From Haliotis rubra (Eukaryota): a stretch of 64,000 nucleotides of DNA. The position numbers were made by a program, and so were the translations under genes. Under the pieces are notes generated by a model. The model searched no databases, was not told where the DNA came from, and worked only from the letters and a program-made list of their open reading frames with translations. The stretch's first letter is position 1. Each line of letters begins with the position of its first letter. The stretch is from the NCBI RefSeq assembly GCF_003918875.1, contig NW_025767356.1:248001-312000 (forward strand). The letters run 5' to 3'. Shown in pieces: positions 222 to 62,680 of the stretch.

Positions 222-1164
222 GCTGTCTCATCTTCATTGCTGCAATGGCCTTCACCTGTTTTATGGTAGCGACTATTGCAGTGTTACTATTTATCAAGGG
301 GTAAGTTGAACGTGTTATTCCAACTGAGCCCAAATACCAGTTGGTGCAACAGTCTGCTTCAAAGCAAACATACGAACAAGAACTGGAAAAATAATTGACA
401 TCTACATTAGCAACTTGCATTTATCACTGTCTTGTATAACTTGCCCTGATTCTGTGTGTGTTTCCAGTAATTGTATGTCTGGAATATCATCCAAATAAAA
501 GACAGTGTGCTAACATTCCAATCTGTGTTTCAGCCCCCAGCTGTTTAATCTGGCTGCTTTATACCAACGACCAGAGGTTACACGCGAAACAGAAGAACCA
601 CTGGGAGCTGTACAGGAAACAGTAGATCCGCAGGGAACTGTCCGGGAAGCAGAATACCTCCAGGGAACAGTACGGGAAGCAGAGGACCTACAGGAAACCG
701 TACGGGAAGCGAAAGACCTCGACCAACAAGAAACTGTACAGGAAGCTAAAGACCTACAGGAAACTTTACGGGAAGCGAAAGACCTCGACCAACAGGAAAC
801 TGTACAGGAAGCTAAAGACCTACAGGAAACTGAGAAGTGGGACGAATGTAATACAGCAACAAGAGAAACAATGAAACCTTCGAGAGCCCCGTATGTTAAC
901 GTGGTTCCTGTGCAGGCCCCTGATGCTGCTCATGTTCCCCCTAAATATGCCGTGCCTCGTAATGTGAAACCTGTGGACCCATCTCCTGAACCAAGTGGTT
1001 ACATTTGCATGCACACTGGTGGATCCAAGGACCTAGTTGTTTACCAACCACCCCGTCAGACCTCTCCCACAGAACTTGATGATCGGGAAGTTGCAGCGTT
1101 CAACACTGGTCATTATTTGTGTATGGATCCATTACAAGAGGCTTTCTCTCAGGACAAAATTTAG
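222..1164 (+). CDS. G1 (5' part outside window): TM exon plus Tyr-motif cytoplasmic exon of a single-pass receptor
   Basis: Exon 222-300 (cag|...|gtaagt, phase 1 to 2) encodes GCLIFIAAMAFTCFMVATIAVLLFIKG. Exon 534-1164 continues in frame through QETVREAKDL-type repeats into ORF 871-1164 (YVNV, YAVP, YICM, YQPP, YLCM). AATAAA at 1214. Confidence 0.85.
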
Positions 1165-1345
1165 AGCAGGCGTAAATATTACCATCCGTCACAGTCGCAC
1201 TGAGAAGTGTTTGAATAAAGCCACATTAAGTAGCAGCTGTTGCTCTTCGGTGCACTGTGTAACTCTTCAAGGAAGTTACTAACTTTGTGTCATAAGTTGT
1301 GATTTGTGTTATGTCACACCTAGCTGTGTATCTTCATCCCAAATA

Positions 1346-1484
1346 GGGCGGTGGTATAGCCTAGTGGTTAAAGAGTTTCTCTCGTCACGCCGAAGACCCG
1401 GGTTCGAAGCCCATTGCTGTTGTCGCCCTAAGTGACATTGCTGGAATATTGCTAAGAGCGACGTAAAACTAATCTCACTCTCTC
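1346..1484 (+). mobile_element. tRNA-derived SINE, family A
   Basis: tagcctagtggttaa A box, ggttcga B box, tail gctggaatattgctaa..cgtaaaactaa. Confidence 0.8.
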
Positions 1485-4759: not shown

Positions 4760-4908
4760 GTGAGGGAGTGAGTTAAGTTTTACACTGTTTTTAACAATAT
4801 TCCAACAATATCACGGCGGGCAACATCAAAAATGGGCTTCACACATTGTACCTATATGGGGAATCGAACCCAGGTCTTTCGGCTTATCCACGAGGCTCCC
4901 CCGCCGCC
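4760..4908 (-). mobile_element. SINE family A (degenerate)
   Basis: Reverse complement of the family A sequence. Confidence 0.7.
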
Positions 4909-5078
4909 GGTGAACACAACATGAAATCCACTTTCGTGAGCACCATGTGTCATCACTAATTTCCACGGATCCTTTCATGTAATGTGCCACAATTGTGGGT
5001 GTTTCGTCGAGTGGAATATGTCTCGAGGCTGCTTTTCTCTGGCATCGGCGTTCTATACTGCAATGGAAGTGTTCACGG

Positions 5079-6820
5079 ATGCCAACTGATCATGACCGTA
5101 GACATGTACTGTTACTCCCTGGAATACAAGGTAAAGCGGCCCAACCTAGTTCTCTTAGATCAGATTATTGTGTAACGTCTGGCTAAGATTCATCAGGGAC
5201 GGAGGGTTAGCCCAATGGTTAAAGTCAAGTCATACCGAAGACCCGGGTTCGATTCCCCACATAGGTACAATATGTCAAGCCCATTTCTGGTGTCTCCCGC
5301 AGTGATATTGCTCGAATATTGCTAAAAGTAAAACTAATCTTACTCACTCACTCACTAAGATGCAACCGACAGAAAGTTGTCAAGCAGTTGATAAGGAAAT
5401 AACATACCTCGCGTGACTATCTTTTGTTATCCACTCGTGATACTTTGATATGATGGTCCTAGTTCTGATTTACTTCACGACGTTGTCGAGGGACTTGGAC
5501 GCAGTGATGGTAAGGCGATCGTTTAGATGATTGTAAACTTTGCAGGTTGGAAGTCGACGTGTAAGAAATGGTGATGGAAGAAATGTGTTCATGTTCGTGG
5601 AACTATACCTGTCAGTTTTGTTTCAGATAATGATATTATGATCATCGTCGCCGCGTGTCTCATCGCAGTGCTCTCTGCCGCTGCCATCGTCATGGGCTGC
5701 TGTTTCATGAAGCGGTGAGCAGATGTTGTTTCAACTACTCAATACCTTATCCTTTCCTATAATGTCACATTCGATTGTATGGCAAACGAACAGCACATAT
5801 TGGCTGTCACGCTAATTCCAAATCTGAAGTTTCACTTCATATCGAACAACAGCTTATGGTGTCTATTTCCCCCTGCATAGGTTGTAAAGAACAACCTATG
5901 TCCTTCCTCAAGGTAACATAAACTTTACAATGTACCAAGGTTTTACATCTTGCACAAAGTCCTGATTTACCAATATCATTACGATTATATCTGTAAGCTT
6001 TGTTTGTAAGAAATGCTGTTCAATTCGGAGATCAACTGCAACACTAATCACACGTTCACATGTCTTCACGTCAATGTATTCTCAGATGGTATTGTTAATG
6101 CCACACCCGCACGTTGAACACGACCAGGATAATACAGCGAGGCCCCGTATGGTAGAGATGATATCTGCACTGGGTGTTTGATTGTTGTATTGATATCATC
6201 ACATAAATATTAATTTGTTCACCGGTTTATTGCTATAATGTAGAGATATTGTTGTACAGGCTCGACAAACAGGCATGTTATCATTTAATTATAGCCATCA
6301 CACTTATTTGTTGGCCATGAATTTCACAGATCGATTTGATATAATATTCAGTTTGTAATTCAATTAAACATACTTGTCAAATGTACACTGACCAACCCGT
6401 GTGACATGTCAGTATACTTGTGGAAATCATACTACAGTAGGCTGATTGATTAATCTATCTGTCTTCTCCTCCAGGACCACGCTAGAGACACGGAAGCCTA
6501 CTGTATCTACTAGCTTGCCACGGCGGTTGGAGACGAACGCTTACACGAACACGGACACCAGGGATAAACACATGCCATCATGCAGCCACCACGGACAAGC
6601 CAATCGTACGTCAGGATCCGGGTATGACAGGCTGCATATAGGGAAAGACAACATTCTGAAGTTCACCGACATGGAGCCGGATTCAGCACAGATATACAGC
6701 CATCTGGCCAGACACGAAGCAGACATGGACTGGGCCGACGTCTATGATACGACGTTGCGTCAGCTTGGCAGAAAACGAGCGGATGGATCCTACAATAAAG
6801 TAACCATTCAGGAAAAATAG
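5079..6820 (+). CDS. G2: single-pass membrane protein with ITIM-like tail and no detectable lectin ectodomain
   Basis: TM exon 5627-5714 (NDIMIIVAACLIAVLSAAAIVMGCCFMKR). Last exon 6475-6820 (SGYDRL, IYSHL, VYDTT, SYNKV). The upstream exon ending at 5130 (phase-1 donor gtaaag, candidate ATG 5079) is uncertain. Confidence 0.75.
5196..5356 (+). mobile_element. SINE family A
   Basis: A/B boxes, (ACTC)n tail, flanks ctaagat(t/g)ca. Confidence 0.8.
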
Positions 6821-8175
6821 ACATGTCTTTGCGATCACGGGCTTCATGTGTGAGGTGCATAAGGTACCGGACCCATGCAGTAAGACTGTCGATAACTTCT
6901 TCCCGTTCAATGTAAGAGGTGAAGACTAAATGATTGTCCATTTGTAGTGTTTGTGTAGTTTGTCATTTCGGCGGTGTCTGTTTGAGTGATTACAGGTAGT
7001 CGGTAGTGCCAGGTAGACATATTCCAGGTCTCAGACGTTTACCATCTCTGTGGAATCCTACAGCACCGGTTTGATGCTGTCAAAACTAGGAATATAATGT
7101 GAGCGAAAGCGGATTCGAACCTACGACCAAATGTCTCTGTCAAAGGGGTGCAACTCTGTAACTTATATGACAGAAAGAGTATAAGAAATATCAGCATACT
7201 CTGCGTTTCTGGAACTACTTAATACAAACAGGTTTTACATAATAATCTCTGAACAAATCACGAGTGAAAACAAATATGCTATTCTCCGCCCTCTCGTTGT
7301 AATTTGTTAGGTACAACAATAGAAATTGATGTTTGCAAGACGACTGTGTCTCCAGCAATCAAACTTTCTAATAGATGCTGGCTCAGATGCATAGTTGAAA
7401 TATAAATTGAAATAACTCAGTTCCCATTTCTCATGTGATTCTACATGATTGTTTAAGGATAATATTATACATATCTGTGTACATTAGTAGAATTAAAGTT
7501 ACTCTGGTTGTCATGTAACTGTCCCTGTTACTAAGCAACTGAGTATTCACGTGACTCCGTTGATCTGTCGGACAAGTGTACTGTTGTAATTGTGATTATA
7601 CGCTTGGAGGCCGGAGAAAAAAACATGTTACGTCTTGTATGTCTTACAGATGTTTTGTTCAGCGTTTCTTTCAATATCAACAACATTGTTCAATGTTCGG
7701 TCGTTAATGTTCAGGCAGACAGTTTCACGGGATCTGGTTACAGATACAATGCTCGTCAGATCGCGAATTAATCACGATTAGGCTATAAATACACTCACAT
7801 CTTCCTTGTTTACTTTCCAGATTTCTTTATTTATCTTGCTGCTTGTATCGACCTTTAAAAAATAGGTTTCACAATTATATAACTGTCTATTGTGCTAATT
7901 ATTGAAAAAGCAACCAGGAAATATTCTGTCAAATATTTTGTCAAGTGTCAATGCATCCGCCTCGAATGACAAAATCATGATACGATTGAGGTGTTTGGAG
8001 ACCAGTCAGTGAATTATACGTGAGGCTCTACATGTCGGTGAACTTTACTAAAGATCTCTCCCTAAAATATCAGACATTGTGGTTTGCTTCTTAATTCTTC
8101 TCAAACGATAACTCATCGAGGGAATTGTCCCAGACCTGTCGACTTCTTAAAGTGTTTAATAACATGTTGATACAA

Positions 8176-8423
8176 GTGAGTGAGTGAGTTTAGCTTTACG
8201 CCGCACTCAGCAATATTCCAGCTATATGGCGGCGATCTGTAAATAATCGAGTCTGGACCAAATAATCCAGTGATGAACAGCATGAGCATAGATCTGCGCG
8301 ATTGGGAACCGATGACATGTGTCAACCAAGTCAGCGAGCCTGACCACCCGATCCCGTTATTCGCCTCTTACGACAAGAGTGGGTTACTGAAGATCAATAT
8401 TCTAACCCGGACCTTCACGGGTC
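8176..8423 (-). mobile_element. SINE family B (about 245 bp)
   Basis: Repeated at 8760-8997, 4520-4740, 2490-2640 and 25310-25398. Flanks tgtt(g/a)atacaagt. The 3' tail is shared with family A. Confidence 0.85.
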
Positions 8424-8759
8424 TGTTAATACAAGTAAGTTTCTAATGCGATGCCCATACTCAACATATACACTCCCCGACTTGTGGTTTTACGGTTTTC
8501 TACACATGCTCTAATAAGGGAAGATGGGGATTACAATGAGGCGTAGGATTCAAAATTACAGATTCCAAAATATCTCTGTTTAAACAGTAAAATGCAAATA
8601 ATATAAATATGTGATTATCCATAATGCTAAGAGGCATGCGCCTGCAGCATACATGGGTGTGTACATAAAAAGAACATTGCATATCAAAATACAACATATT
8701 TCTGTAAACTGTTTATCAGTTAACTGTTTTGATTGCATCATACATATGTACATGCCGAA

Positions 8760-8997
8760 GAGTGAGTGGGTGAGTTTAGTTTTACGCCGCACTCAGCAAT
8801 ATTCCAGCTATATGGCGGCGGTCGGTAAATAATCAAGTCTGGAACAGACAATCCAGTGATGAACAGCATGAGCATAGATCTGCGCAATTGGGAACCGATG
8901 ACATGTGTCAACCAAATCACCGAGCCTCACCACCCGATCCCGTTAGTCGCCTCTTCCGACAAGCATGGGTTACTGAAGATCAATATTCTAACACGGG
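8760..8997 (-). mobile_element. SINE family B
   Basis: Near-identical to 8176-8423. Confidence 0.85.
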
Positions 8998-9949
8998 TAC
9001 ATGTGGAAGAAATGATAGGAAGTTAGCTGGGCAGTTGCCGAGTGCGGCGTTAGAGAACAGCACAATCTGATTGATGGATGGTTGTCACATGTGAATTATT
9101 TCGTTTGACGATTGCGGTTACTGCAATACCAAACATTACACGTTTACCATTATTGAAAATGGCTCTGGTGATATATGTAAAAGCCTTTATCTCGTGAGGT
9201 GAGAGTCCCTCGAACACAAATGGAGCACATGTTGCCCGGTTATTTAGGTAAAAAAATCGCGATGCAGAGTTTGGGCTAAGGGCATGGCGGCACCCGCTAA
9301 TTGAGGGTTCGAATCCAGATTATGGTCGTAGGTTTGTCAGCAAGACAGTGGTAAAGATCTGAAGCCTGCATCAATTCGGCTTTTCCTCCCACATATAGTT
9401 AACACGCTGTAATAGCACAGGAATATTGTTAAACGAGGCATTCAACACGCGCACCCAGCCTAAAGGCTAACCAGGTCGGCTATTACGTAGCGAAACTTAG
9501 AACAATATCGAGAGATATGGTTAACGTCCGTGTTCCCGTCCGATGCAGTTGTGAAAATACAGCACAAAAAGATTCACGATATCTAACACCATGGTTCAAG
9601 CTGACACCTAAAGGAAACACAGTAGTGGAAGTACGGCTTGACGCATGTTCCTCGATCAGGCTTCAGCTGGGTATCTACACTGGTGGAACAGGCAAGATGC
9701 AGGCAGATGGTAAGTAGATATTTCATCCCCTCATAAACAACTCAGTCATGTAACTGGAGAAGCGAACTTGGTACTTTTCGAAAAAAACGTCAAACATTAT
9801 CCAGAATAATTGTACAGTTCCTTGTCAGTTGAGTATGACCAACATACTTTAGCAGTATTATTCCACTGTGAAATTTCAAGTAAAAAAAGATCCCCAAAAA
9901 CTGTTGCGCCTGAAATGGATCCAGTGTCCAGTCGCGGTGGTTACTTCGA

Positions 9950-13101: not shown

Positions 13102-15027
13102 AAAACTCGACATTCCATTCTTCTTGCCACCCTGCAAGTTGGTCTTCAGCAGCGTCAAGCTGCGAGGAGACACATGGCACGATCTTCAGTATCTATGACT
13201 TGAGAACACGTCGAGGTGGACAGGAGGTGCAGGATGCCCTGAGAGACCACGGGGAACTTTGGATTCAGAACAACTGGACGGGTAAAACATTCTCTGTTGT
13301 TGTTCCAGACATATTCTCCTCTTGATAAGCTACTCCAACACAATTACGACATCTCTGTCACAGCATGGTACGTTTGCCGGGATGTTTAACTTCAGGAATA
13401 CAGATGCTCTGACATCATTCACTAACAAACCACCTGTTAAACTAGATACCAGATTCAATACCGGATCGACATGCTAGCACAACAATTACGTCCCTAATGC
13501 ACTATATACACTTGTATACAGTACCTGGCGGAATGCACGTTGACGAACTTGATTCCTGCTGATCGGGATACTCTGTGATTGTCATCGTAAGAATATACAG
13601 CTAAGAGTTCACACAATTATATTTCATCGAATGAAGCTAAATTATATTTTATTTCCAGGAATCATGTTTAGTTTCTGCAATGAGTATGATGCTAAGTAGT
13701 GTGTTGCCAAGGATGACAACATGATGCTGAATTCTGCTGTACAAGGGAGTGTTATATTCCATATTGTGTCTGATTACATGTATGAGGCTGAGTCACGTTT
13801 CAGTACCAGGAATGGCTATTTGGCTATAATAGGTTTTCCCACCAGGGATGATTATGATGACAAGTAATTTTTAACAGGGATGAATGTGGTGCTAATATAT
13901 GTCTCAGTACCAGGAAAGAGGACATGTATAATACTGCTTTGTTTTGTTACAAGATGCTAAATTATGTCTTTTAGCAGGACTGAACATCATGCTATGTGAT
14001 ACCGATGAATGGCGCAGATTAATGGTAAAAGGGATAAACTTGGTGCTGGGTAACACCTCATTACCAGGGATGAGACTTATGCCATATGATCATTTGTTAC
14101 CTTGGAATAAGTGTGATGATATATTGCGGTTTAATACGTAGGCATGATGCTGAACAATGTTTTCGTTTGAGCGATGAGCTTAATTCGAAATTAGCCTTTG
14201 AAGCCAGGAACTGCAAGGGATGAGTATGATGCTAAGGTATGCTTTATTACAACGATGCTATATATGTTTCTTTGTGTTCCAGACTGGTCAAATACAACAA
14301 ACGGATATGACTGTGCTACTATAGTCAACGGAAGCATTACCTTTACACAGACCAACTGCAGCGCGTTACGACACTACCTGTGTATTTCCAATGACAGTAC
14401 GTATACGTAAAGGGGCCTATAAAACATAAACAGCATTTTTCATGTCCAATTCTGATTGACTGTAATAGGATATATATAATTCTTCCCGCCATCCAGCTGT
14501 TTGCCTGTTTAAACATTGATACAGATAATATATGTTTAAGATATATAAAACTAAACTAAGTTCCTCTTCCAACTTCTATTTTTGTTTTTCTACAGCTTGG
14601 CGAGGAAATGGTAAGTTCTATTCGTTCAATAGGGAAGGTCTACTCATTTCAGATTGGGTTTGCACAGAAATATACATATGGATTTAATTTCATTGATGTC
14701 TGCAGTTGCTTCAACTAAGAGAATAAAGCTACACATGGTAAAGATAATAATGTTGAGTACGTTTGAACATTCATCACACCCATACGTCTTGAAGCATTGT
14801 GGACAGAGGGGTTGTAATTCAGTATGAACTTTATTTTTCCCAGGTTCACAATGTGTCCAAACTACAACCATGCCATGGATATTTGGTACGTATATACCGT
14901 TCCTTGTTACTAATGTTTCGAAGTATATGTATGCATTCCGTATATCCAGTGGCTTCGTCACGCTCGTCTAATACTAAAGGTCTAACCATTTGGTATGCCC
15001 CGTATACTATAAAATTCATCATCATCA

Positions 15028-16736: not shown

Positions 16737-16871
16737 NNNNNNNNNNNNNNNNNNNNNNNNNNNNNNNNNNNNNNNNNNNNNNNNNNNNNNNNNNNNNNNN
16801 NNNNNNNNNNNNNNNNNNNNNNNNNNNNNNNNNNNNNNNNNNNNNNNNNNNNNNNNNNNNNNNNNNNNNNN
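16737..16871. other. Assembly gap
   Basis: Run of N. Confidence 1.
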
Positions 16872-18012: not shown

Positions 18013-18163
18013 GTGAGTTAGTATGGTTTTACGCCGCCTTTAGCAATATTTCAGCAATATCACAACAGGGGACACCAGTTCACACATTGTACCCATGTGG
18101 GGAATCGAACCCGGGCCTTCGGCGTGACGAGCAAACGCTTTAACCACTAGGCTACCCCACCGC
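18013..18163 (-). mobile_element. SINE family A
   Basis: Reverse complement of family A. Confidence 0.8.
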
Positions 18164-42384: not shown

Positions 42385-42553
42385 GGGGCGGTGGGGTAGC
42401 CTAGTGGTTAAAGCGTTGGCTCGTCACGCCGAAGACCCGGGTTCGATTCCCCACATGGGCACAATGTGCTAAGCCCATTTCTGGTGTCCCCGCCGTGATA
42501 TTGCTGGAATATTGCTAAAAGCGGCGTAAAACTAAACTCAGTCAGTCAGTCAG
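42385..42553 (+). mobile_element. SINE family A, young copy
   Basis: TSD tcgattata, (CAGT)n tail. Confidence 0.9.
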
Positions 42554-46900: not shown

Positions 46901-48197
46901 AACTGTTACAATAACCAATGCAATGCAAACTGAAAACACGAATGTCTGTACATCGACAGATCCTGATTGGTATATACCGTGTCCAAACGACTCACCTGGC
47001 AAAGGTAATATTTTTCTGTTCATTCTGTAATGACATTTGCTATTGCATTGCGTGTCTTCACTGTTTTCTATATAAGATATGTACTATAAAATGTAAAATA
47101 ATGTCTCTTCGAATAGCATCAGTTCATCGCGTTGAGACACTGGTTAGGACTGGATAAGACTGACATCCATGATCTCTCATCGCTCAGAGATCCAGTGTAC
47201 AGTTTCTCATATGTTTACATAACAATCACCTCTGTGCTCAACTTCTTTTCCTACTTTGCGAATGTCTAAACATTTCTACCATAGCACATTAGGCCTGTTC
47301 CTTATTCTGTAGCTGTCATCACTGTTTTCAGTGATCCATTCATATAATATTCACAGCTTTTTTCCCCTGCACCGAAAACAATATGTTTCTAAGGATAATC
47401 GAGATTGTGTATCGTTTAGCATTTGGGTTCTATTTTTAAAACGAGCGAGGAAATGAACAGAGGGTTTATTTTGCATAACGGAAATATTTCAGTTTCATAC
47501 CGATGCACATATACGCTTGATGCGCTTTGTAAATTTTGCGAAAAACGGAATAGAATGTGTGAGGAAAAATATGGTATTCATTTTATACATACGCACATTA
47601 ATTATTGTCGATATATATTCAACTTCCTTGTGGGGAAGTGTTACTTCTCGGGAGGACATTGAAATCTAATGTTACGTCTTTTTTGCGAACTGTTACAAAT
47701 TAGTCACTGTGTAATTTTAGGTAAACACACTTTATCGGATATAACATGTCAAAATATAATACTCCATTTATTGCTTCTACAACACACAGGAACGATTGCG
47801 TCATGCCCACCGACATATGAAGGTGTCTTAATTATAAATATAATTATTGTTTCGTGAATTGAAATAATGCGAGAATGTAGCTCCATGTGTATTTTATGAT
47901 AGGCTTTCGTCAAGTGATTGATATCCTTGATGGGTATCATCAGCTGATATTTGCAGGCCTGCCTCAACATAACTGTTATGATTTTATATATCTATGTATA
48001 TTCTTTTTAAAAATGCATTATTTACAGATTGTCACACATGCCTCTGTATTATTTACCATGGTAGAGAACCCTTCTAAAATAATTATTACAATAACGTAAC
48101 AGTGAGTAAACCAATCATCTTTGTGTGACATGTTATATATTCAGGTATAACGCCTGCTTTTGTCGTCGCTGTGATGTCGGCCATCGTGTTATCATAA
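43937..48197 (+). CDS. G7: CTLD-like member whose TM exon ends in a stop (tailless, GPI-like or pseudogene)
   Basis: Signal exon 43937-44039 (alternative donor at 44009), 45304-45483, 45731-45829 (GTCLV...TSCTEQNHYLC), 46960-47004 (WYIPC), possible 47790-47822, then 48145-48197 GITPAFVVAVMSAIVLS*. Confidence 0.75.
46035..46859 (-). mobile_element. Internally deleted Tc1-like transposon in a G7 intron
   Basis: TIRs aac(t/c)ga(t/c)gtgcaaaagaaagtacacaggt with TA flanks. ORF 46228-46584 encodes only the HTH region (DRPRSGRSRVTT); no DDE domain. Confidence 0.9.
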
Positions 48198-50287: not shown

Positions 50288-53200
50288 ATGATGAACACAG
50301 TTGTAGCTGGTATAATCTGTGCTACTCTTGTAAGGCTTGAGTTGATACTGATGATATTGGGAGGTTCACATCCAGTGAGTACTCGCCGGGCAGGTACGTC
50401 GTGTACTCATTGCACGAATGGTGTGTTGTTTATGGTAGGATCTGCGTGTGCGTGCGTGTGTCCGTGTTGTGCGCTCCTGTCGTTATGTGAGCCACTTGCG
50501 ATTGCTATTTGTTAGAGGACTGCATAATGCTGACCATTTTGTTGTTTTAGAAAAAATATACTAGTACAGAAGAAATAGCTACATTTCAGTAAACTAAAAC
50601 ATCATTGCACCGCGTATTGGGTTCGATCGTGACATGATTGTGAACCATTTCCCCTCACCGCAATGTAATGTCTTGTCTAGAACCTAATGCTGACATTGGG
50701 CCGGTGGGGTAGCCTACTGGTTAAAGCGTTGGCTCGTCGCGCCGAAGACCCGGCTTCGAATTCCCACTTGGGTACATTGTGTGAAGCCCATTTCTGGTAT
50801 CCCCCGCCGTGATGTTGCTGGAATATTGCTAAAAGCGGCGTAAAACTAAACTCAGTCAGTCAGTAATGCTGACATTAATCACCCTGAACCCATATTGAAC
50901 GTTTACTGGCTAGTAGAGGCGGTTTAAGGACATTGACTGCAAAATGCAAATTTTCCCAAAGACTTTAACCACGTACTGTGCCACAACCTTTGGAACCGGC
51001 AAGATAATTATGATCATCTACACTGATGCCCATATTATCACATTTTGCTAGTACCGCATGGATCTGAAGACATGTCTTGATGGCTCCCACTATCCTCTAC
51101 GTGGTGTGTCATATTTAGGATTGCTGTATGATCCGAGGTCATTTTGAGGTCAGTGGTTTAGTATTGCCTCACCTGTGGTATCTTTAATATTAAATAGTAC
51201 GAATGATACACGTGCATTCATTTTCAACAAGGTTACATTTACTCTGGCAAAAGCTTCGTGTTGTGATGATATTAATGAGGAAGATGGGATTCGTTAATCA
51301 TGTAATCGTGTTGATCCCGTTAGACAAGATGGGGAGAAGGTGCCCGCTGAAACGTTATTTTGGTTTGGAGAACACTTGACTGGACTTCGCGTGTGTTTAT
51401 TGGATCATAAACACATCCTTTTATATGGCAGGTATCACACGTGTGACCGTGGAATGGCATTGCCTGACTTTATTTGATTACTAGCATGTAACTCAATTAG
51501 TAGTAAAGCTTTAAAAATATTTGCTGCGGAAAAGAAAGTGATATATCTTGATAATAAGCTTGTTTAATGTGTGATGTAGTCAATGACTGACTAAACATTG
51601 CCCTGAAGTATTTATAATTAACACCTGTTTGATGTTTCGATTCATTCTCAACATTGCTGACATAGGACAAAAATGATGCTGAAATATATAGTATAGATGT
51701 GGAACATTATGTGCATGTTATGCTATGCTAATCATTTCGTATTATTGATATCTGTACTACATAGAAGCGGCAGAACCGTCATAAACATATGCGAAGTCTA
51801 GTCAGTTGTTCACCTGAAATAATTCGGGAACGTATGGTATAAGTCAAAATAGGGAATTGCATCGGACATCATTTTTGTCACTATTGCATCAAATTTTGAA
51901 ATTTCCTCCACATGTCTATCATAAAACTTCTTGAAGGCTTTTGTTGAGGCCTTGATCAAACAACTTCTGAGCAAGAGTGGCATGAGGCCCTATGAAATCC
52001 TGATAAAATGAGCACCTCCTTGATTGCCTCTCAAAATTTGTGAAATGTAAACATCAAAGGCTGGAGCTGTTGAAATATTGCTCGACATGAAAGGGAACTT
52101 GACTATTGGAATCATCCCTGTTGTCGCACAGCCTTGTGTAGATTTTTTGTCACTCTGAATCTTTATGCGTAGATCTAAACATGAAACAGTTGAGGCAGTC
52201 TCACTTGTCTCCTTAATTTCAAGTTTAGGTCGGTAAATCAGTGAAAGGCAATTAGCTGTTTGAGGGTTATTGAACGATATTAAATCATCGATGTACCGGA
52301 AGCTTATTAAGTTAAACTTCTTGGCCAACTTACCATGTTTTGATTCATATGCATACAGAACCAGATCCGCAAGGAGGGGGGCACAATTGGTTCCCATGGA
52401 GATGCCTGCGTCTTGGCGAAATGTTTTACCCCCACATTTCACAAAGATGTTATCAATGAGAAAGTTCAGCATTTCACATATTGTTTTCTCGGTAAACTTG
52501 AAATGACATTTGCTTTCATTTTTTTACACATTGTCCTGAACCTCTGAAGATAGATATGTAGGTATATCTTTGTTCACCACGTTTGTTTACAAAGCCCCAT
52601 GAATCAAGGAATGGAGTTTTTCCTTGATTGTTATGTTTGTGTACTTGTTTTTTGTATGCTAACATCTGTTTGAAATCTGTGTTTCCATGATGTCTTTACA
52701 GTATTGCCCAGTGTCCATGGGTCCTGCTTCCCCGCTAGTGCAGCGATGGCGAAGAAAAACTGTGAGGAGAGAAGCGGGGTCTTATTCAGCATTGATGACC
52801 TGAAGATGGCCCATGCTCTACGTATCATGGAATTAGCGATACAAGACTTGGGAGACATATGGATGTTTACGAATAGTGCAAGCACTTTAGAGAGAAGTAC
52901 GCTTATCAAATGTTCATGATTTTAATGTTTAAATAAAATCGTTAGTATATTTGATAAAGGGTAAATATATGTTTGAGTTTTACAAAGACCAGTGAACGTT
53001 TGACATTATACGTTCGTCATAGATTGTAAATGACCGTTATTAACGGTTCATTGTTACGTTTATTACAGATCTGGACGTGGCCGGAACGTGCCTTACTGAC
53101 GTCAACAACAACCGTAAGTAGATCACATTAATGTCACATACAGAAGGACAACGCATAATCATTTGGTCAGGTTCATATCATCAATATCTTAACATAAACC

Positions 53201-56200
53201 ACTAATATTTACATAAGAGCAAACACGTGGCGATAAGGCAATGATACATGTAGCTGCCACAGTCATGATGGTTTACTGGCTGTATACGGCAATGTGTACA
53301 TTCACTCAGATAGGCAATCTCCATCAGTTGTTTACCTACATGTATGCATTATGCATCTATTCGTTCTTGTTGGTGGAAAGAGACACTTGCAAGGAGATAT
53401 ATCTGAATGAATCGGTGGAAATCAGTTATGTAACCAGGTTGCCGTATACATGTCAGCATGTCCTGCTCTATCGGTATGACCCTCAAGCCACAACATTGTT
53501 ACAGCAAGGGGTGTGTAAAGAGTAAATGGATGGCAGCTCACATAACGGCGATGATGTGCGTATGCAGCATCACGACAGACTAATCTTTCTATGTTCAACG
53601 TTCCTTCACACTGTTCCAGGTTCCTGTCCTAAGGGCGTCAACTGTGGAGACTTACATGGATGCTGCAAGTCTACGGTGACAGGTTTGTATATATAGTAAT
53701 GTCATAAAATATATGCACTGCTGATATTTGGGGATGGATATTCCTCCACTTTTCTTGAAACACACATATGTATATAAACTGTGTAGACGGGTGGACTAGG
53801 CGAGTGTTCAGGGCTTTCGTTCGCCAAGCTGTTGAATCGGGTTCGATTGCAACAGATGATTCAACTTGCAAATCACGCTTCTGTTAATGAACACTATCTG
53901 GGGGATGGGAATCTGAAAATGTTATACATGTAAAATTCATTAATACGCTGTTTTGCACATGTATGTGTTTTCATAGAAGCTGTCATTTCATGAAATTGTA
54001 TCAGTATTGCATTCTATAACTCGATATACTAAATGTAATTGATTAATCCACAAACTATTTGTTTTCAAAGATTCGACAGGTGTTAATACCTTCACAAGAA
54101 TCAGCTGTGAGGAACTGCGTCATTATGTCTGTAAAATAAACAGCAGTAAGTATACATTATTTGAAATGATAAATATATTTGTGTTAGTGCTACATATTGA
54201 TTGATCAGCTACAATGGGTGTGTGGCTGGGGGTGTCCAGGTCGCCACAACGTCACCGTTAACTGTGCGCGTTTGCTTCTCACAGGCACGAAACAAACTCA
54301 AGTTGCTGGTTCGAATCACAGTTTGCCCCCCCTTCCTTATTTGACAAAAATGTACCTAACATTGTGTAATCTCCCTAAGGGACATCACAGACCCCCGAAT
54401 TGCCCCTTTTTTCATCATTCCTACCTCTATAAGGTCGTTGGGGTAGCATAGTGGTTAAAGCGTTCACTCGTCACATCGAAGGCCCGGGTTTGATTCCGCA
54501 CATGAGTACAATGTGTGAATCCCATTTCTGGTGTCCCCCGCCGTGATATTGCTGAAATATTGCTAAAAGCGGCGTAATGCTAAACTCACTCACTCCTACC
54601 TCTATATCCAACTGTCATCTACCTCTATATCCAACTGTCATACTGTCATCCTTTTAGCCGATTCACTAATTTCATATCCGTTTTGTTAATTTATTTCACT
54701 CACCTGTAATTGTTTGTAAATATTCACGACCCAGGATACGTTGACATGCAATCAGATACGTCCCCCGGCCTGACCGCATAATCTGTGATACCGACTCTAC
54801 CGGGCCTAGTCCAGTATTCCTACTCTACTTTGGTATGCTGAACATAATACATTATGATTATATTGGGCTCCGCATTCTCATCGAATTTGTGATTTGGAAC
54901 ATTTAACGCATTCCTCTGCATTTTCAGCTGGTCAAGATTTTCGCGGGAACAGTAAGTATGGTCGGAAAGCACACATTCGCGCCGCGAACTCATAAACAGA
55001 TCAGAAATTGTTTGTCATGTTAAGGTGGTATCCATACTCAAGAGGAAATTATAATAATACTGAGAAGTGAATCCTTTGTAAATACAGAAGTAAATCATAT
55101 CAACAGTTACATTTCCCTCTGCTACTACTATGTCGTTGACGTCTACGTTAACGTTTTACAGTACACCGTTCAACGGCAAAAGATCCTGTGTATACTGGAG
55201 TTGTGACCAACAGAAATATCCGGAATCCCCTTTTGTATTTCACCAGAATAAGTATCTGGACTCAGTTTATGAATTTTTACATTTACTGATCATACACCTG
55301 AGGAAATCACTTGTTATTATAATGTGTACTGAATTATGTTGTTTGTAATCAACATGTATTGCTCGTTGTAGGAACCAAAGAAATGTACATTCCATGCATG
55401 AACGACACATCTTCATCAAGTGGGTAAAGCTTCAGACTACATTTGGTTCTAATCTAAACTTGTATCCGACTAGTATGTCAACGTATTATGACATCGGTGT
55501 ACGGAGTGATGATTGTTTTTGTGACCACACGTTGGAAGGGTGTTAACGTTTATATATTGCTATTCCATAATATAACCCTTTTCCACTGCCACAGGGATGG
55601 ATTGTACTAGACCCACTGTATCTTGAGCGCGTGTCCGGGCTTATTCGTTGTTTGGTAACAAATGCTCTGTGTCGACTTTGAAGATTCAACACATATTATC
55701 ACCATTTATAACCACTGTATATATTATCTGCTCTTAAGTCGCACAATTCTTCAACAAAAAATTCCATATACTAGTGACTTGTTCAACAATTCTGATCTCG
55801 TCTTTGTTCCAGCTATTGCTATCATCATTGGCGTAGTCGTGACGGTGACGGTGGTGGCGGGCTTCATTACATGCTGCTGCTGTCTAATCAAGTGGTACGA
55901 ATGTGATCCTATCGTTTCTAACATACATTCTTCCATTTTGCCGATTGACCGTTTTAACGGGTTTGGTAGATAATGGAAATATATGGACAAGATATAAGAT
56001 TGTAATTATACTACATGTTAATGACGTTTCACACAAACCTTCCTTTATGCCGCTGCAGCGTCACCAAGCCGATCAAGTATGCAGTGCGAGTTCAGAGTGC
56101 GCTGTACCACAAGAACAACCCTGGACCGGGAGTAGCCGGGGGTCCTCAGACCAAACCACAAGACATGTTAGCTACACACGTGGTCAACCTTAACAACATG

Positions 56201-56203
56201 TGA
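50288..56203 (+). CDS. G8: CTLD-like type I receptor, Cys-rich juxtamembrane region, short tail
   Basis: Exons 50288-50393 (signal), 52702-52896, 53069-53113, 53620-53682, 54071-54145 (ISCEELRHYVCK), 54928-54951, 55372-55419 (MYIPC), TM 55813-55894 (...FITCCCCLIK) and tail 56059-56203. Confidence 0.85.
50698..50863 (+). mobile_element. SINE family A, young copy
   Basis: 13-bp TSD taatgctgacatt. Confidence 0.9.
51850..52630 (-). mobile_element. Penelope-like retroelement reverse transcriptase fragment
   Basis: ORF 51990-52472 has GISMGTNCAPLLADL, FRYIDD and FPFMSSNI..APAFDVYISQ; degenerate. Boundaries approximate. Confidence 0.8.
54432..54593 (+). mobile_element. SINE family A
   Basis: 13-bp TSD tcctacctctata. 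Confidence 0.85.
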
Positions 56204-58803
56204 AGAAATAACTGTTTGATACACACAACCTGGGACTGAGTGCAACTACAAACAGCAGTTGGAGTCGGGCTCGGACGTCAATTACAGACATCATAATTGC
56301 CGATTGGACGTCACTTTACAATGTGTCGATGGAGCAATGAGCACGCCTTAAGACGAGACGAGTTTTGATGTGACTGTGGCATGTTGCTGCTGTTATTCAT
56401 GAATTCCTAAGTTGTGTGTGTGTGGTTATAAGGTACCCACGCGACAGTCCCTAGCTGGGTGTACCAAGCATGGATATAGTGCATAGCATCAGCAATTATT
56501 TGTTAAAAAAATGCTCATTGTTTTCATAACTACTGATTTGATGTACCATGACCTGGCCGAGGACCAACTCTCGTATTCGTAGGGCTTACAGTTGAGAGAT
56601 TTCCTTGGGATTTAGTTAACTATGTAACTACTTGGGGCCTTTATTGTGGATAATACATGTTCTTGTCATGGGATAATTATGTTAGTTTAATACAAATCAT
56701 CCGATGAAGGTTTGTTTAACAAACACAGTTGTCAGCCCTGGCTGACGTCAAGAGTTGCATACTCCGAGGTCCGCGCTTGACCCTGAGATTGTGGTCAGAA
56801 TTACTACAGATACGTCATTACTTCTGACTAGTTACTGTCAGTGTTGCTAATGCGTTTACATTCGCCTGGTAGACGTTAACACTTTGTCCTTAAAGCCTAA
56901 GTGCATTGTATTTCAAAAAGCCCTTTGAGCCACAATGCGCAGTGCGCACTAATCGGATTCTCTGAATGCGAGGAGTTAATGACGAATACAATACCCAAGG
57001 TCTGTTTGGTCTGGCGTCAATGAATTGGCCCATGAGCTCATATCATTGATCACTGCTAAAAGACATTGACTTCGTTCCTTATTATCCTTTATGTGTTGTA
57101 ATTCAAGTAATACTTTCGATAACAAACGACACGAAGTGAGTTCATTGGGTAGCAGGAAATTATTTTTGTCCTTGTTTCGCTTTTGCAGACGAAATACATG
57201 TTTCAGGTGTTTTTTCCCATTATTGAAGAGGCCGTGTTTCAGATAAATGCATGTTTGTGGCAAATGTGTCAAAACTGTAGGAGAGTGTGTCCTCGTATAC
57301 GTACTTTCAGTTGTACACTGTTCATGATGTGGCTTAAATACTGCCGATGTGACTTTAAATATTAACTCACTCAGTCACGCATTTTTTTACTGGGCAAAAT
57401 TAGTCAAAAAGAGTTATACACATTGGCAAGAATCACAAAACATATATTAAATTAGAAAGAAATGTGGAAGAGCTACCGCCTCGCCTCATTCCCAGCTATG
57501 AGGTTTGAGTAAGGTTTGGGTGGTGACAGTGTGGAAACAGATTTGATGGCAGGAGGTAAACAGGAGTCTCTTTATACGAGGGCTGTTTTAGATCATGTGG
57601 ATATTCAGATGTGACAAACATTTAAAGGGTGATAACTCGTGATAGTCTACTGTCTATATCTTGGTTCTCCTGATGTCTTGTTTGGTGATTTCCTGGTACA
57701 CTGTACACTGGTAAATGTCGGCTTATTGCGCTCCCGCATGTACACTTGTTAAAAACTATTCTTGATCCTGCTGAACCAGTCTGGGGCGAGACCTATGAAG
57801 GGAACAACTGATTGTGCCAAACATTGACAATGGTTTGACGACATGTTCGATCGTGGATATTATATCAAATAAATTCCCTGAAAATGTATCACAATTGCGT
57901 GTCAAATTAGACAGACACATACAGCACAGATGTCTATTGATGTATGTTGTGTCGCACTACATGCACAGTGTTGACTGTATGGTACATATACACTCTGTCA
58001 AACTCGGACTCTGTCTTTCTCGGATTGCTGTATTAACAGGACTGAACTTACGGTCCTGGCGTAATCCTTCTTTGTTGCCATAATGAAAAAGCTCTGTAGC
58101 TCGGACTCTCATTATTTCGGATTTCGGACCAAAGTGTCGGCCCGAAAAGGTAGTTACACGTAAAACTGTACACGATATTGTGTATTCTCTGCCCTCTTTT
58201 GTAAACGTTTTTGTGTGTAAAAGCCTCCATGTAATGAACATGCACACATCGATAATCACATTGATTTCAATTAAGTACTAATAAAGTATCACGCTTTCAC
58301 TTAAGCTCATATTCAGCTTTGTTTAACATCTGGTATACCTCTGAAGGTATGAAGAGTGTGTGTGTGTGATATCCATTGATATCAAGGAAGCCTCATGTTT
58401 GTAAACAGTATTGAGCAGGCTGTGTTTGAGCATTGGTCCGTGTAGATTTCCCGCTCTGTGAGACCACCCCAGCGTAGATTGTTGATGAAGTAAGGGGTGA
58501 TGCACGTCGTTACAGCGACGTGCAGGACCTCAGAGTACAGGTTGTAAGTTGTAGCTGTGAATACTTCTGTTTTAACTCGTTCGAATCGTGATCATCCCGA
58601 GAGGCAGGGAATACGAAAACTCTCTTTTCACACATGCACTCTCTCACACATATTCGAACCGCACACTCTCTCACACACAAACGTACTCACATCCACACTC
58701 TCACACGCACGCATTCACGAACAACACTATCTACTTTATAGTCTCTCTTATGTTCACGCACACACGTACACATATGTTCTCACACATAAACCCGTACGAT
58801 CAA

Positions 58804-58866
58804 TCTCTCTCTCTCTGTCTCTCTCGTTCTCGTTCTCTCTCGCTCTCCCTCCTTCCCTCCCTCACG

Positions 58867-58897
<31 letters not shown>

Positions 58898-58913
58898 TAT
58901 TTATAATGTCAAT

Positions 58914-58950
<37 letters not shown>
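58804..58950. repeat. (CT)n/(CA)n microsatellites just upstream of the G9 start
   Basis: Read directly from the sequence. Confidence 0.9.
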
Positions 58951-58953
<3 letters not shown>

Positions 58954-59109
58954 TTACATGCACAATCACATGCTGAGACAGTTCTCACAAATCTATAAAC
59001 CCTTGACACTGGTGTATCATTACTCAATTGTGTCAGGCGTGTTACAACCCGGAAGCTGGGTCAGCACTCTGACAGTCTCTAGCTCCCCTTTGGTCACGAC
59101 ACAATAGCG

Positions 59110-62100
59110 ATGGCCCGTGTACGCCCATCTCTCGCTGTTATAATACTGCTGATACTGACGTTGGATAATTCTAGAGTAACCCACAGTCAACATTCAGGTG
59201 AGTGACTGTTTTACTACAGATATAGACCATTCTTCAGCTCTAATCTCCTTCATGTCTTTTATCCACAAGATCTATACTGCACCTGACAACCGAAAGTCAA
59301 TGAGAAGCATTATCTTTGCATGATGATATGTGTGTTAAGAGGAGGTAATATAATATGATCTTTACATGCATTTTGTTTTCATGTCCGAGATATGAAGTAT
59401 CTAGGTTTATATAATATGTAAGGCAGTTGACCTCAGCAAGACCAACCAACATGAAAGTATACCAGGTTTTCACGCATCTCTCGTAACTATAGATGTGATG
59501 ACGCTATAGAACCAATATATTGTCACCCACTAAATACTATACAGAGTTCTCATTATCTCATGTCAACCCTTAGAGATGTTATCTCAATTACTTACTTCTT
59601 TTTGTAGTAAATAAGACATTCCATGGATCCTGTTTCCCTGCAAACGCAACTGTGGCTGAGATAAACTGCAAGAAGGAAGGTGGAGATTTATTCAGCCTTG
59701 TGGATTTGAAGTTGGCCTATGGTCTTGTCGTGTTGGAGTCGGCAATACCTGATGTGGGGGCGATATGGATGAATGGCAACACAGGCAGTAATGTTTTTAC
59801 GTATCATTATCTCATACTTGTGAACGGAAGCAAGCTTGTGTGACCGATTACGTCTAAATTGTTTGATTCTAAAATAATTCCTCTGTTATTTGTAGCTTAC
59901 ACATGTTAAATATGAATATTACACAAGCATATAGAGTGCGCTTATTACTTTAGGGACGACAGAAGATGACCCGTTGTCATTTCATTATCATCAACAAGAT
60001 AGGGGCAGCATTGTAAATACAAGTAAATTGACGTTTCCGTGACCTGATAGACAGATCACCAGCAGTGGTTCGATCTATGGCCGCATACCAAAGTACACAC
60101 ACGCACGTACACGCGTACATGCATGCACCTTCACATACACACACCTACACACATGCACGAACACACATGCATGCATATCGTTTTCTTAGTGCATTTGTCT
60201 TCAATCCTCATTTCACCTCACCATATGAACAGACATGAAATATACAGGTGAAAACATCAACCATACGACGTTTATTGTATACGAAATACATGCATCTCAC
60301 GCTTCGCACGCCCTTCTGCTGTTTTTCTGTTCTTCAGTAGTTAGTGAGTCTGACGTCTATCAGGAACTTTACAATACCTGCCGATATTACATCGACATCT
60401 TCGTGTTCTGTATTCGCAGCTACTTATCCACTCAATGTCAAGCATAGTCATAATGTCCCATATAAGTGCACCGCCTCATTTATATGTTCGACAAAAGATA
60501 TATCACTTGCAACAATTCAAATTATTATGTGATGTTATACAGCAATCCAGTACACTGTTGGCATCATAAAATGCCCAATACAATGATCTCAATACATTGT
60601 GCAAAATGATGTTGCAGATCCCTGTCAAAGTACCACAGATGGAGCCAGTATCAAGACAAACATTTGTTGTGTGGCTGTTAGTGAGTACACGCTTGTGGCA
60701 CATTACCACTGTATACATGTACCTGCTGTTCTTTGTGTATCATACAGCACAGATCCTCAATAACATCTGACCTCAAGGTCATCTCTACTGATGACATGTG
60801 TAGCATGATATCTGGCGTTTTTGGAGGATGTGCATTGTATTGTGCCAAGAGGTAGATACCGTTGATACAACATTTATCAGTGGTGAGAGAGTGAGCAGTG
60901 AAGTGGTTGGTTTATGCTGAACTTAACAGTGGAAATGTACTACATGCTTCTCGGTAGACTTATGTATGTAACTGACTGCCCCACATCAGCTGTTACTCTT
61001 CAAGCAACCCGATATGTCGCTTATTGCATGTGTGACATCAGCATAGTCTTGTTTGATTCAAACAGATTTTATCTTGCTTTTGTCAGATTCAAATGGCACT
61101 AACATATTCCAGACCGCCAACTGTGGAGACCAGTATCACTATGTTTGCAACTTAAACACTAGTAAGTGGAACAGCGTTCATTTGTAATTTGCAACAGCAT
61201 GATTTAACTTCATTTTGGTGTACAATATCATAACGTTATGTAAACATTGTTTAAATTTCACTTGTAACAGGAAATTGTATTCATTATATGATAAAACTAA
61301 ATGGAACGTAACTATATTAATTGGTCATTACGTTCATCTTGATATGACATGTGCACATCACTTCAAACATCCAAACTAGGTGGTCACTATGTCAGATCTA
61401 GAATCATATGAACAACATTAGTGTCCAGTTGAAATCTAGATGCTCACAAGATCTACATAGAAGCAACGTCAGATTATCCGAAATATAGTTGAATTTGTTG
61501 TGTGTATCTTCATCTTGTACATTGTTACCCACAGCTTCCACGGAAGAGCGAAATGGTAAGTATATATCATGCAAGAAGACTAAAGAATCAAGCATGCGAT
61601 AACTCGCCTTACGGTTCGAGATGTGGAGCAGTATGAAACACAGATGTACAGCCATGTTTATTTTCTTTCTGTGCCACAGGAACACATCTCTACATACCTT
61701 GCTTGAACAACATACCTTCAACAGGTAAGCTGATGAAATGTTTCCTATCCCGGTATGTAATGTCACAGTCACTAAAACATGTCACATCCATGTCACAGGA
61801 AAGGCCGGAAATGGCATGTCAAATAAATATGTCAGAAATCTGCACTATTCGTCAACATCGTCCCTGCCTTAATCTATGAATTCTCTGTACATGTGTAATA
61901 CTTCCCTTTAATGAGAATTGGTAGGTTACATTTTGTCACTTTTGCAGACATTGCTGGCATCATTGCGGGGACGTGCCTGACTATAACGCTTGTCGTGGCT
62001 TTGATAACTGTCTGGTGCTACTGCAGTCGGTAAGGGAATGGTCTTATTTGTGATGATTTTCTTAAACTGATATATACTTGACAAAAATAGTTACGGATAT

Positions 62101-62680
62101 ATGTAAATTTTGAAATTATGAATTATGATCTATTTATTCATTTACACCCTGATAAAATATCAATCATAAAAATACTAATATACCTAACTTATTTTGTCCA
62201 GTATATATGCACCATGCTGCTGAATTACAGGTAACGTTTTAGACCGGTGGGTTGTACATGGTACAAGAGTTCATAAAGAAACATTCTATGTGATTCAGGA
62301 TCAGGAAACCCAAGCGTTATGCAGTGCGGGTTGAGAGTGCGATATACCACCGTCAACATCCTGATACAGACAAGGGAGGCAACAGAGCTGCTGATGTAAC
62401 GGCTATAGATGACATCAACACAGACTCTGCTGCTATCAACCAGGAACAACGTAAAGGAGCAAATGGCGGCGATTATGACACATTGTGCAGGATGTGGTCA
62501 ACAGAAGACAATGTAGTTAACCAGAGGTCCGACGTGGCGTCGGTGTACAGCCATTTGTCAGGAATTGACAATCTGGGTGGTTGGACCATCGAAAACCATT
62601 ACGACAGCACCGCTGTACCCATGTATGACAGGAGACCTGTTGATAATTTATATGACAGAACACATGTCCCGGATATATAG
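59110..62680 (+). CDS. G9: CTLD-like type I receptor with ITIM-like long tail
   Basis: Exons 59110-59197 (signal MARVRPSLAVIILLILTL), 59608-59787, 60618-60680, 61087-61161 (ANCGDQYHYVCN), 61535-61555, 61680-61724 (LYIPC), TM 61948-62029 and tail 62299-62680 (DYDTL, SVYSHL, HYDST, LYDRT). One small exon between 59787 and 60618 may be missed. Confidence 0.9.

Follow-up and report, generated by a model that had tools for sequence, protein, structure and literature searches.

In oysters, the membrane C-type lectins CgCLec-TM1 and CgCLec-HTM are reported to signal in hemocytes via a hemi-immunoreceptor tyrosine-based activation motif (hemITAM) and Syk, and to have a domain that recognises sugars and binds lipopolysaccharide and bacteria (PMC13027682). 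They are the closest functional precedent in molluscs for the locus described here, a tandem array of genes in a 64,000-nucleotide stretch of the blacklip abalone Haliotis rubra (QXJH01000649.1, assembly GCA_003918875.1, about positions 248001-312000; hereafter the window). The array consists of eight undescribed membrane-protein genes, five of them lectin-like (G3, G5, G6, G7+G8 and G9) and three lectin-less (G1, G2 and G4). On balance, we favour the reading that it is a conserved Haliotis array of type I lectin-like receptors and receptor-derived LAT/PAG-like adaptors, with phosphotyrosine scaffolding as its most likely role. Like the oyster receptors, the lectin-like products are molluscan membrane proteins with a C-type-lectin-type domain and a tyrosine-motif tail, and the G-[DE]-Y-D-x-L box of G9 and G2 resembles a hemITAM. 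Unlike them, in a comparison by description only and not by sequence, the abalone domains lack the EPN, QPD and WND motifs, the tails are long with many tyrosines, and the genes stand in a conserved array together with lectin-less paralogues.

The vertebrate natural killer (NK) gene complex (NKR-P1, Ly49, CLEC2 and the Dectin-1 cluster) also invites comparison, since its tandem clusters, tail tyrosine motifs and lectin-like domains without calcium sites all have parallels here, and NKR-P1B is the best structural match. However, its members are type II proteins whereas the abalone ones are predicted to be type I. The complex is marked by fast gene gain and loss and by near-identical inhibitory and activating pairs, whereas the abalone genes show one-to-one orthology and ectodomains 27-44% identical; they also show no adaptor signature of the immunoreceptor tyrosine-based activation motif (ITAM), and their matches to the inhibitory counterpart (ITIM) are at chance. 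The group of layilin, CD302, chondrolectin and CLEC14A has the same order of leader, N-terminal lectin-like domain, membrane segment and cytoplasmic tail, but no specific sequence relationship is shown; the abalone domain is shorter, carries its long loop on cassette exons, is predicted to tie its N-terminal strand to the stalk by an additional cysteine pair and is so far confined to Haliotis. For the lectin-less G4, G2 and G1, the counterparts are LAT, NTAL, PAG, LIME and SCIMP, which likewise have a tiny extracellular part, a single membrane-spanning segment whose cytoplasmic end bears a cysteine, and a long disordered tail with repeated YxN (five in G4, four of them conserved), although homology to them is not detectable.

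The window has a G+C content of about 40% and long, tyrosine-rich reading frames on the plus strand. An all-against-all comparison of its stop-to-stop segments gave six homologous plus-strand segments of about 60 codons each, every one of which is followed by a second conserved segment with the terminus C-x(4)-H-Y-[VL]-C. These form six ectodomain exon sets with starts near 13102, 24707, 33202, 45303, 52702 and 59608, and the self-comparison and the gene models together place the whole array co-oriented on the plus strand. A preliminary description of the window had counted nine co-oriented genes with six homologous ectodomains; the orientation and the six ectodomains hold, while the count falls to eight since G7 and G8 are one gene.

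The complete exon chains of G5, G7+G8 and G9 were obtained by exact mapping of RefSeq proteins, H. rubra RefSeq proteins aligning to the window at 100% identity, and those of G3 and G6 by exact match to P0009 (470 amino acids, aa) and P0011 (277 aa), whose source was not looked up. An independent splice-site scan recovered the same junctions, plus those of G1, G2 and G4 (Table 1). All ectodomain introns are in phase 1. The membrane exon has a phase-1 acceptor and a phase-2 donor, and the whole tail lies on one exon; the latter arrangement, already recognised in the preliminary description, is found in G1, G2, G3, G4, G6, G8 and G9. Exons absent from that description are one to two short middle lectin exons, covering the region between strands beta2 and beta3 (the long loop), and one to three stalk exons, the last with Y-[IVH]-P-C. 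Two junctions depart from the GT-AG rule: G9 isoform X2 uses a GC donor, and the acceptor of G7+G8 at 54068 is not AG.

For the identity of the ectodomain, we compared a profile of nine family domains with PDB. The 16 best matches (E up to 0.22) were all C-type-lectin-like chains, including PLA2R (1.5e-7), Ly75 (7e-6) and the single-domain agglucetin beta-2 (6.5e-5). AlphaFold2, given an 18-module alignment, returned five models in agreement, with a predicted local distance difference test (pLDDT) value of 78.3 and a predicted template modelling (pTM) score of 0.74, and the order of elements (beta1, alpha1, alpha2, beta2 to beta5) is that of C-type-lectin-like domains (CTLDs). When the model was searched with Foldseek, the best matches in PDB were NKR-P1B (root-mean-square deviation 3.3-3.5 Å), snake-venom lectins and mannose-binding protein C (MBP-C), and AlphaFold DB returned lectin-like domains only. 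By profile and predicted structure, the ectodomain is a true C-type-lectin-like fold, which bears out the earlier suggestion of a CTLD-like ectodomain. The type I topology proposed at the same time is also upheld by the order of N-terminal leader, lectin-like domain, stalk, membrane segment and tail.

Across the 18 modules of alignment A4, the canonical cysteines C25, C80, C97 and C105 are invariant, as are W58 of the I-W-I strand and one N-terminal cysteine, and the stalk cysteine (Y-x-P-C) is conserved in at least 90%. The N-terminal and stalk cysteines co-occur in every module, and cysteine counts are even (6, 8 or 10) in 18/18 only when both are counted; the two probably pair within the same domain as a predicted intramodule disulfide. 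An interchain disulfide via the stalk cysteine was also considered, and the intramodule pair was preferred, since both domains of the two-domain gene possess a stalk cysteine of their own and the counts are even only per module. The EPN, QPD and WND motifs are absent in all 18 modules, and the predicted fold is a lectin-like one without the classical calcium/sugar-site motifs. Among paralogues, the length of the long-loop region ranges from 0 to about 40 residues. The highest value in the pairwise identity range of the window's ectodomains, 44%, is that of G8 and G9, too low for the receptor pair that had been supposed.

The preliminary description had taken G7 for a tail-less decoy. However, RefSeq P0004 (LOC124257073), which maps exactly, splices the G7 stalk exon 46960-47004 to the first lectin exon of G8 at 52702 and thus comprises two lectin-like domains, the G8 membrane segment and the G8 short tail. 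The two-domain architecture is also annotated in H. asinina (P0003, 386 aa), H. rufescens (LOC124136742, four isoforms) and H. cracherodii, and the decoy is dropped since RefSeq models in four Haliotis species join G7 to G8. Because the G7 and G8 domains lie in different branches of the family tree, the fusion is old. The last lectin exon of P0004 starts at 54068 behind CA rather than AG, and moving the acceptor to the AG at 54071 would keep the frame with one residue fewer. Upstream of the G8 half, a possible alternative or relic leader exon (50288-50393) was found, whose ATG and GT donor persist in H. asinina (L002:16148-16249) together with the open frame and the hydrophobic core. None of the RefSeq models retrieved uses it; a G8-only isoform arising from an alternative promoter there is possible. 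On the minus strand, the 5.7-kb intron joining the G7 and G8 halves also holds a transposase N-terminal fragment (46228-46584), whose winged-helix match scores under the Pfam cut-off, and a 160-aa open reading frame (ORF) without a Pfam match (51990-52472).

The cytoplasmic tails are very different between genes, as had been described, and every tail motif quoted in the preliminary description is present in the sequence. To weigh these motifs we used 5,000 shuffles per tail. YxN is enriched over all tails (9 seen vs 2.6 expected, P = 0.0012) and in G4 alone (5 vs 0.53, P = 0.0002), where four of the five are kept in H. asinina; YxxP (8 vs 3.1, P = 0.01) and YD (11 vs 4.6, P = 0.004) are enriched as well. 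The ITIM-like pattern [SIVL]xYxx[ILV] is seen 2 times vs 1.84 expected (P = 0.56). The two ITIM-like sites described before, SVYSHL in G9 and SGYDRL in G2, do exist, but they are not accompanied by any enrichment. The Y-S-H-L core is conserved, and the ITIM reading is not, because orthologues and paralogues differ at its -2 position (S, S, P, A, Q); the Y-D-x-L box fits a hemITAM-like pattern equally well.

Four boxes of the G9-type tail are conserved across Haliotis orthologues and paralogues, namely K-P-x-x-Y-A-V-R-x-E-S-A-x-Y-H-x-Q-H-P (box 1), G-[DE]-Y-D-x-L-C (box 2), V-Y-S-H-L (box 3) and E-N-x-Y-D-x-T-x-V-P-x-Y-D-R-R-P-V-D-x-x-Y-D-R (box 4). The short tail of G8 retains box 1 only, and does so in three species. 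In activating paired receptors, either the membrane segment bears a charged residue or the protein has an ITAM in cis. No tail in the window contains an ITAM, defined as Yxx[LI]-x(6-12)-Yxx[LI], and none of the membrane segments of the window genes contains K, R, D or E. Juxtamembrane cysteines occur as C-C-C-C in G8, C-x-C in G9 and C-C in G2, and such runs suggest palmitoylation.

The three lectin-less genes consist of membrane and tail exons with little else. For G1, whose 3' part lies in the window, the acceptor at 222 is in phase 1 and the donor at 300 (GGG/GTAAGT, the slash marking the exon end) in phase 2, with the following acceptor at 534; the tail of 209 aa carries YVNV, YAVP, YICM, YQPP and YLCM. 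Its orthologous tail in H. asinina (L003:740-1291) gives a ratio of nonsynonymous to synonymous substitution rates (dN/dS) of 0.47, and the H. asinina G1 product, at 236 aa, leaves no room for a lectin domain. Between 600 and 860, the G1 tail shows an imperfect acidic tandem repeat, Q-E-T-V-x-E-A-K-D-L, which is partly conserved in H. asinina. In G2, the candidate leader carried over from the preliminary description fits in phase and is unverified; the tail of 114 codons has GYDxL and IYSHL boxes in common with the G9 tail, and the H. asinina orthologue (dN/dS 0.51) is annotated at 136 aa with its start at a Met inside the membrane exon.

G4 starts in a micro-exon, ATGGAGG/GTAAGT, which is kept in H. 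asinina as ATGGAAATAA/GTGAGT. Its extracellular part is about 4-5 residues, its tail has 242 codons, and its frame is open in H. rubra and H. asinina with a dN/dS of 0.51. Having few residues outside the cell, a single membrane pass and a long multi-YxN tail, G4 has the make-up of a LAT/PAG-type adaptor. Homology to vertebrate LAT, NTAL or PAG was not detected, Pfam giving no match and the feature scores of Atlas, a protein-language-model tool, being 0.60-0.74, under its reliable range. Within the window, the G4 tail is related to that of G3 (E = 8e-11), and the G8 tail to the start of that of G9 (3.6e-8). G1, G2 and G4 are probably receptor copies that lost their ectodomain exons; such a loss would keep the frame because all those exons are in phase 1. 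The adaptors are probably receptor-derived, since they have exon phases and tail sequence in common with the neighbouring lectin-like receptors.

Among the lectin-like genes, the spliced window DNA of G3 translates exactly to P0009 through GT-AG introns, and its tail of 249 aa holds 16 tyrosines. The H. asinina orthologue P0002 ends at a premature stop, with two further in-frame stops downstream (L003:18163-18624); to judge from these stops, the tyrosine-rich tail is mostly lost in that species. For G5, the sole RefSeq product retrieved is P0007 (LOC124257071 X2), which is not the longest isoform, has 159 aa and ends in a stalk exon without a membrane segment. A membrane exon was not found in the window by hydropathy scans, by tblastn with the corresponding exon of H. 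cracherodii P0054 or by blastn of that locus, and G5 is probably without a membrane anchor in this assembly. A hydrophobic stretch at 26973-27026 was considered as the missing exon and rejected, since it adjoins the tail acceptor and a 30-nucleotide (nt) intron would be needed. The "Tyr-free tail" formerly assigned to G5 corresponds to the exon at 27042-27201, which has a frame break near 27195 relative to H. cracherodii P0054 and upstream of which no membrane exon was found.

The spliced G6 DNA, without exon 36000-36071, translates exactly to P0011, and a 301-aa G6 product whose end is at 38398 is recorded for the contig. We infer that exon 36000-36071 belongs to the latter because the 24-residue difference equals 72 nt. 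The G6 tail is acidic and has the C-terminus YDNVTYMF. The G6 intron that separates the first lectin exon from the middle one contains a plus-strand Tc1/mariner transposase frame (34023-34880, 285 aa, no internal stop), in which Pfam finds DDE_3 (9.5e-17) and HTH_Tnp_Tc3_2 (4e-08), and which is not part of the receptor. G9, to whose exons RefSeq P0005 (LOC124257074 X2) maps exactly, has seven tail tyrosines. Isoform X2 requires the GC donor at 59784; three bases further along, at 59787, stands a GT donor that would add one residue and is presumably the one used by a 311-aa G9 product on record. In H. cracherodii, the isoforms P0083 and P0010 of the G9 orthologue (311 vs 292 aa) differ by exactly the middle lectin exon, which suggests that the long-loop region can be spliced out of the lectin-like domain. 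Since P0011 also skips a lectin exon, the last one of G6, it appears that the phase-1 lectin exons can act as cassettes.

At the DNA level we compared two genomes, H. rubra and H. asinina, at a synonymous divergence (dS) of about 0.4. Orthologous exons of all eight genes lie in the same order on H. asinina chromosome CM074535.1, with splice sites, cysteines and tail boxes conserved. The dN/dS is 0.34 for lectin exons, 0.50 for tails and 0.60 for leaders plus membrane segments, so the tails diverge faster than the ectodomains; the ratios are raised, and they give no sign of pervasive positive selection. Tail frames are open in both species in six of the seven compared, the exception being the distal G3 tail of H. 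asinina with its three stops, and the family tree resolves into one-to-one orthologous groups. The raised ratios (0.34-0.6) would suit the fast divergence of the systems invoked in the preliminary description, but they stay below 1, and the one-to-one orthology and fixed gene order at this dS do not agree with it.

The first relatives, found by a protein search with the G3 tail as query, were H. asinina proteins; H. rubra RefSeq proteins were then reached with an alignment as query, and a word-indexed search with the P0002 ectodomain returned no match except the query. An exhaustive profile search gave 74 proteins, which beyond the close short ones are long proteins with several lectin domains. 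The short membrane-type relatives whose source was looked up (16/16) come from four Haliotis species, H. rubra, H. asinina, H. rufescens and H. cracherodii, all of which have annotated members; five further short matches, including P0009 and P0011, stand outside this count. So far, the family appears to be restricted to Haliotis. We also considered P0001 (Logan contig DRR299178) as transcript evidence and rejected it, since upstream of the tail exon the contig continues into intron-like sequence and is genomic DNA. RefSeq labels every family member "uncharacterized protein", probably because single proteins score under the Pfam Lectin_C cut-off. In the literature, no paper was found that names LOC124257070-074, and a search on Haliotis membrane C-type lectins returned a general review only, in line with the original remark that the family is undescribed.

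Taken together, these genes look like signalling receptors. The lectin-like ones would have a leader, one or two compact CTLDs free of calcium/sugar motifs, a Y-x-P-C stalk, a membrane segment often followed by juxtamembrane cysteines, and a disordered tail with tyrosine boxes, while G1, G2 and G4, with membrane and tail exons only, would act as LAT/PAG-type membrane adaptors. A ligand, protein or glycan, may bind the variable long-loop face encoded by the phase-1 cassette exons; the receptors would then cluster, Src-type kinases would phosphorylate the tail tyrosines, and SH2 proteins would be recruited. In this scheme, an adaptor of the Grb2/Drk type would dock on YxN and one of the Crk/Nck type on YDxP or YxxP, and the G-[DE]-Y-D-x-L and V-Y-S-H-L boxes would attract a partner of the Syk, SHP or Src type. 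The analysis establishes the gene structure and fold, along with the conservation, the synteny and the enrichment of motifs; phosphorylation, binding partners, ligand and tissue are predictions.

The preliminary description had instead proposed a complex of paired immune receptors in an invertebrate, a counterpart of the NK gene complex, the leukocyte receptor complex or Alr, in which ITIM-bearing, activating and decoy members diversify quickly against pathogens or self. Clustered lectin-like receptors with very different tails, raised dN/dS, single-lineage losses (the anchor and tail of G5 in H. rubra, the tail of G3 in H. asinina), the S-V-Y-S-H-L match in G9, the conserved Y-D-x-L box and the hemITAM/Syk signalling reported for the oyster lectins would all suit such a complex. 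We nevertheless consider it unlikely, since the proposed inhibitory, activating and decoy mix is not supported: ITIM-like matches are at chance with a variable -2 residue, neither an ITAM nor a charged membrane residue occurs in the window genes, and the supposed decoy is half of G7+G8. The short tail of G8 is conserved in three species and is hence not a recent truncation, the ectodomains are far from near-identical, and it is the tails, rather than the ectodomains, that change faster. Nor is the rapid gene gain and loss of paired receptors seen here, since all eight genes are collinear in H. asinina. Stable orthology would also suit a non-immune role as adhesion, matrix or endocytic receptors of the layilin/CD302/chondrolectin type, in which the lectin-like domain would bind a ligand of the matrix or cell surface and the Y-x-x-hydrophobic boxes would be sorting or cytoskeletal-linker signals. 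Such receptors have the same order of leader, single lectin-like domain, membrane segment and tail, Y-D-T-L and Y-S-H-L match the sorting pattern too, and the nearest named Atlas clusters of G9 are layilin (0.88) and CLEC14A. However, the Atlas score is under the reliable level, the exhaustive profile search gave Haliotis members and then generic multi-lectin proteins with no specific affinity to layilin or CD302, and the YxN/YxxP enrichment and the lectin-less adaptor paralogues favour phosphotyrosine scaffolding over sorting; we regard this role as improbable.

Several observations nevertheless weigh against the receptor-and-adaptor reading that we prefer. Exon 1 of G3 has no evident signal peptide. 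No single protein reaches the gathering score of Pfam PF00059 (Lectin_C, 22.6 bits), the best being P0004 with 20.6 and the others giving 14.8-19.1 bits or no match, and single lectin exons find no match in Pfam. Tail tyrosines are 78% conserved vs about 67% for other residues, a weak difference. The Atlas similarities, including those of the G4 tail to PAG, LIME1, SCIMP and LAX (0.60-0.74), are below the reliability line of the tool and serve as weak leads only. The G5 anchor loss in H. rubra and the G3 tail loss in H. asinina further imply that constraint on individual members seems loose. Pressed further, the broken G5 anchor and tail and the stops in the H. asinina G3 tail, along with the fairly high dN/dS and introns full of transposon debris, might mean that the array is mostly decaying or mis-annotated DNA whose frames and motifs have no function. 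That is very improbable, because orthologous exons of all eight genes stand in order in H. asinina with splice sites, cysteines and tail boxes kept, the same gene models appear in four species, and the frames of G4 (242 codons) and G1 (209 codons) are open at a divergence where an unconstrained tail gained three stops.

Table 1 Exons and other mapped features of the abalone array (window positions).
Gene or feature	Positions	Strand	Basis or remark
G1 (3' part; start upstream of window)	membrane exon 222-300; tail exon 534-1164	+	splice sites
G2	candidate leader 5079-5130; membrane exon 5627-5714; tail exon 6475-6820	+	splice junctions
G3	9517-9709, 13102-13281, 14283-14396, 14844-14885, 15224-15280, 15432-15507 (membrane), 15894-16644 (tail)	+	spliced DNA = P0009
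G4	ATG micro-exon 19271-19277 (7 nt); membrane exon 19849-19919; tail exon 20258-20987	+	splice sites
G5	23304-23391, 24707-24886, 25241-25291, 25640-25711, 25921-26009 (X2 stop)	+	exact map of P0007
G5 relic tail exon	27042-27201, out-of-frame continuation to ~27298	+	homologous to H. cracherodii P0054 tail
G6	31150-31240, 33202-33381, 35239-35316, 36000-36071, 36631-36657, 36962-37015, 37676-37754 (membrane), 38074-38398 (tail)	+	
G7+G8 leader	43937-44039	+	by homology
G7+G8 domain 1	~45303-45483, 45731-45829; stalk 46960-47004	+	P0004 mapping
Possible alternative or relic G8 leader exon	50288-50393	+	ATG, hydrophobic core, phase-1 donor CAG/GTACGT
G7+G8 domain 2	52702-52896, 53069-53113, 53620-53682, 54068-54145	+	P0004 mapping
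G7+G8 stalks, membrane exon, tail	stalks 54928-54951, 55372-55419; membrane exon 55813-55894; short tail 56059-56203	+	
G9	59110-59197, 59608-59784 (or 59787), 60618-60680, 61087-61161, 61535-61555, 61680-61724, 61948-62029 (membrane), 62299-62680 (tail)	+	
Assembly gap 1	16737-16871		93 nt past G3 stop (TAA 16642-16644); ~2.4 kb before G4 ATG 19271
Assembly gap 2	25426-25609		within G5 intron between exons 25241-25291 and 25640-25711

Neither assembly gap touches a coding exon, and no coding frame crosses either of them. The first is intergenic or 3' untranslated region. The intron that bears the second measures 348 nt in H. rubra (184 of them N) vs about 291 nt in H. asinina, a similar length, and all three lectin exons of G5 are complete without the gap sequence. 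A short interspersed repeat, about 120-150 nt long, is scattered in both orientations (4764-4956, 5159-5399, 18003-18168, 37356-37552, 42404-42545, 50680-50859 and 54430-54614); its copies within genes are all intronic, and its pseudo-peptides are 55-90% identical in the self-comparison. Local duplications are found within 8116-9067, where 8243-8443 resembles 8829-9023 (75% at the peptide level), and a short tandem array (31294-31677) directly follows the G6 leader exon. CA/TG-rich, microsatellite-like tracts at 45481-45625, 58557-58998 and 60032-60250 produce T-H-T-H pseudo-ORFs and are intronic or intergenic.

Membrane lectin-like receptors with signalling tyrosine motifs are familiar from vertebrates, and oysters have a few known ones. 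New in the abalone array are the type I topology, the compact domain, the extra stalk disulfide (predicted), a ligand loop on in-phase cassette exons and the lectin-less LAT-like paralogues within the array itself. A bolder version, which we offer tentatively and think rather unlikely, is that the array forms a mollusc-specific receptor-plus-scaffold unit for hemocyte recognition, with loop cassettes switched in and out, and thus an independent invention of vertebrate immune-signalling logic. Should the products be adhesion or sorting receptors instead, the array would be an ordinary lineage-specific gene family. If the tails recruit SH2 adaptors in hemocytes, it would provide a model for how receptor/scaffold modules arise by exon loss, and its genes would be candidate disease-resistance markers in a farmed species.

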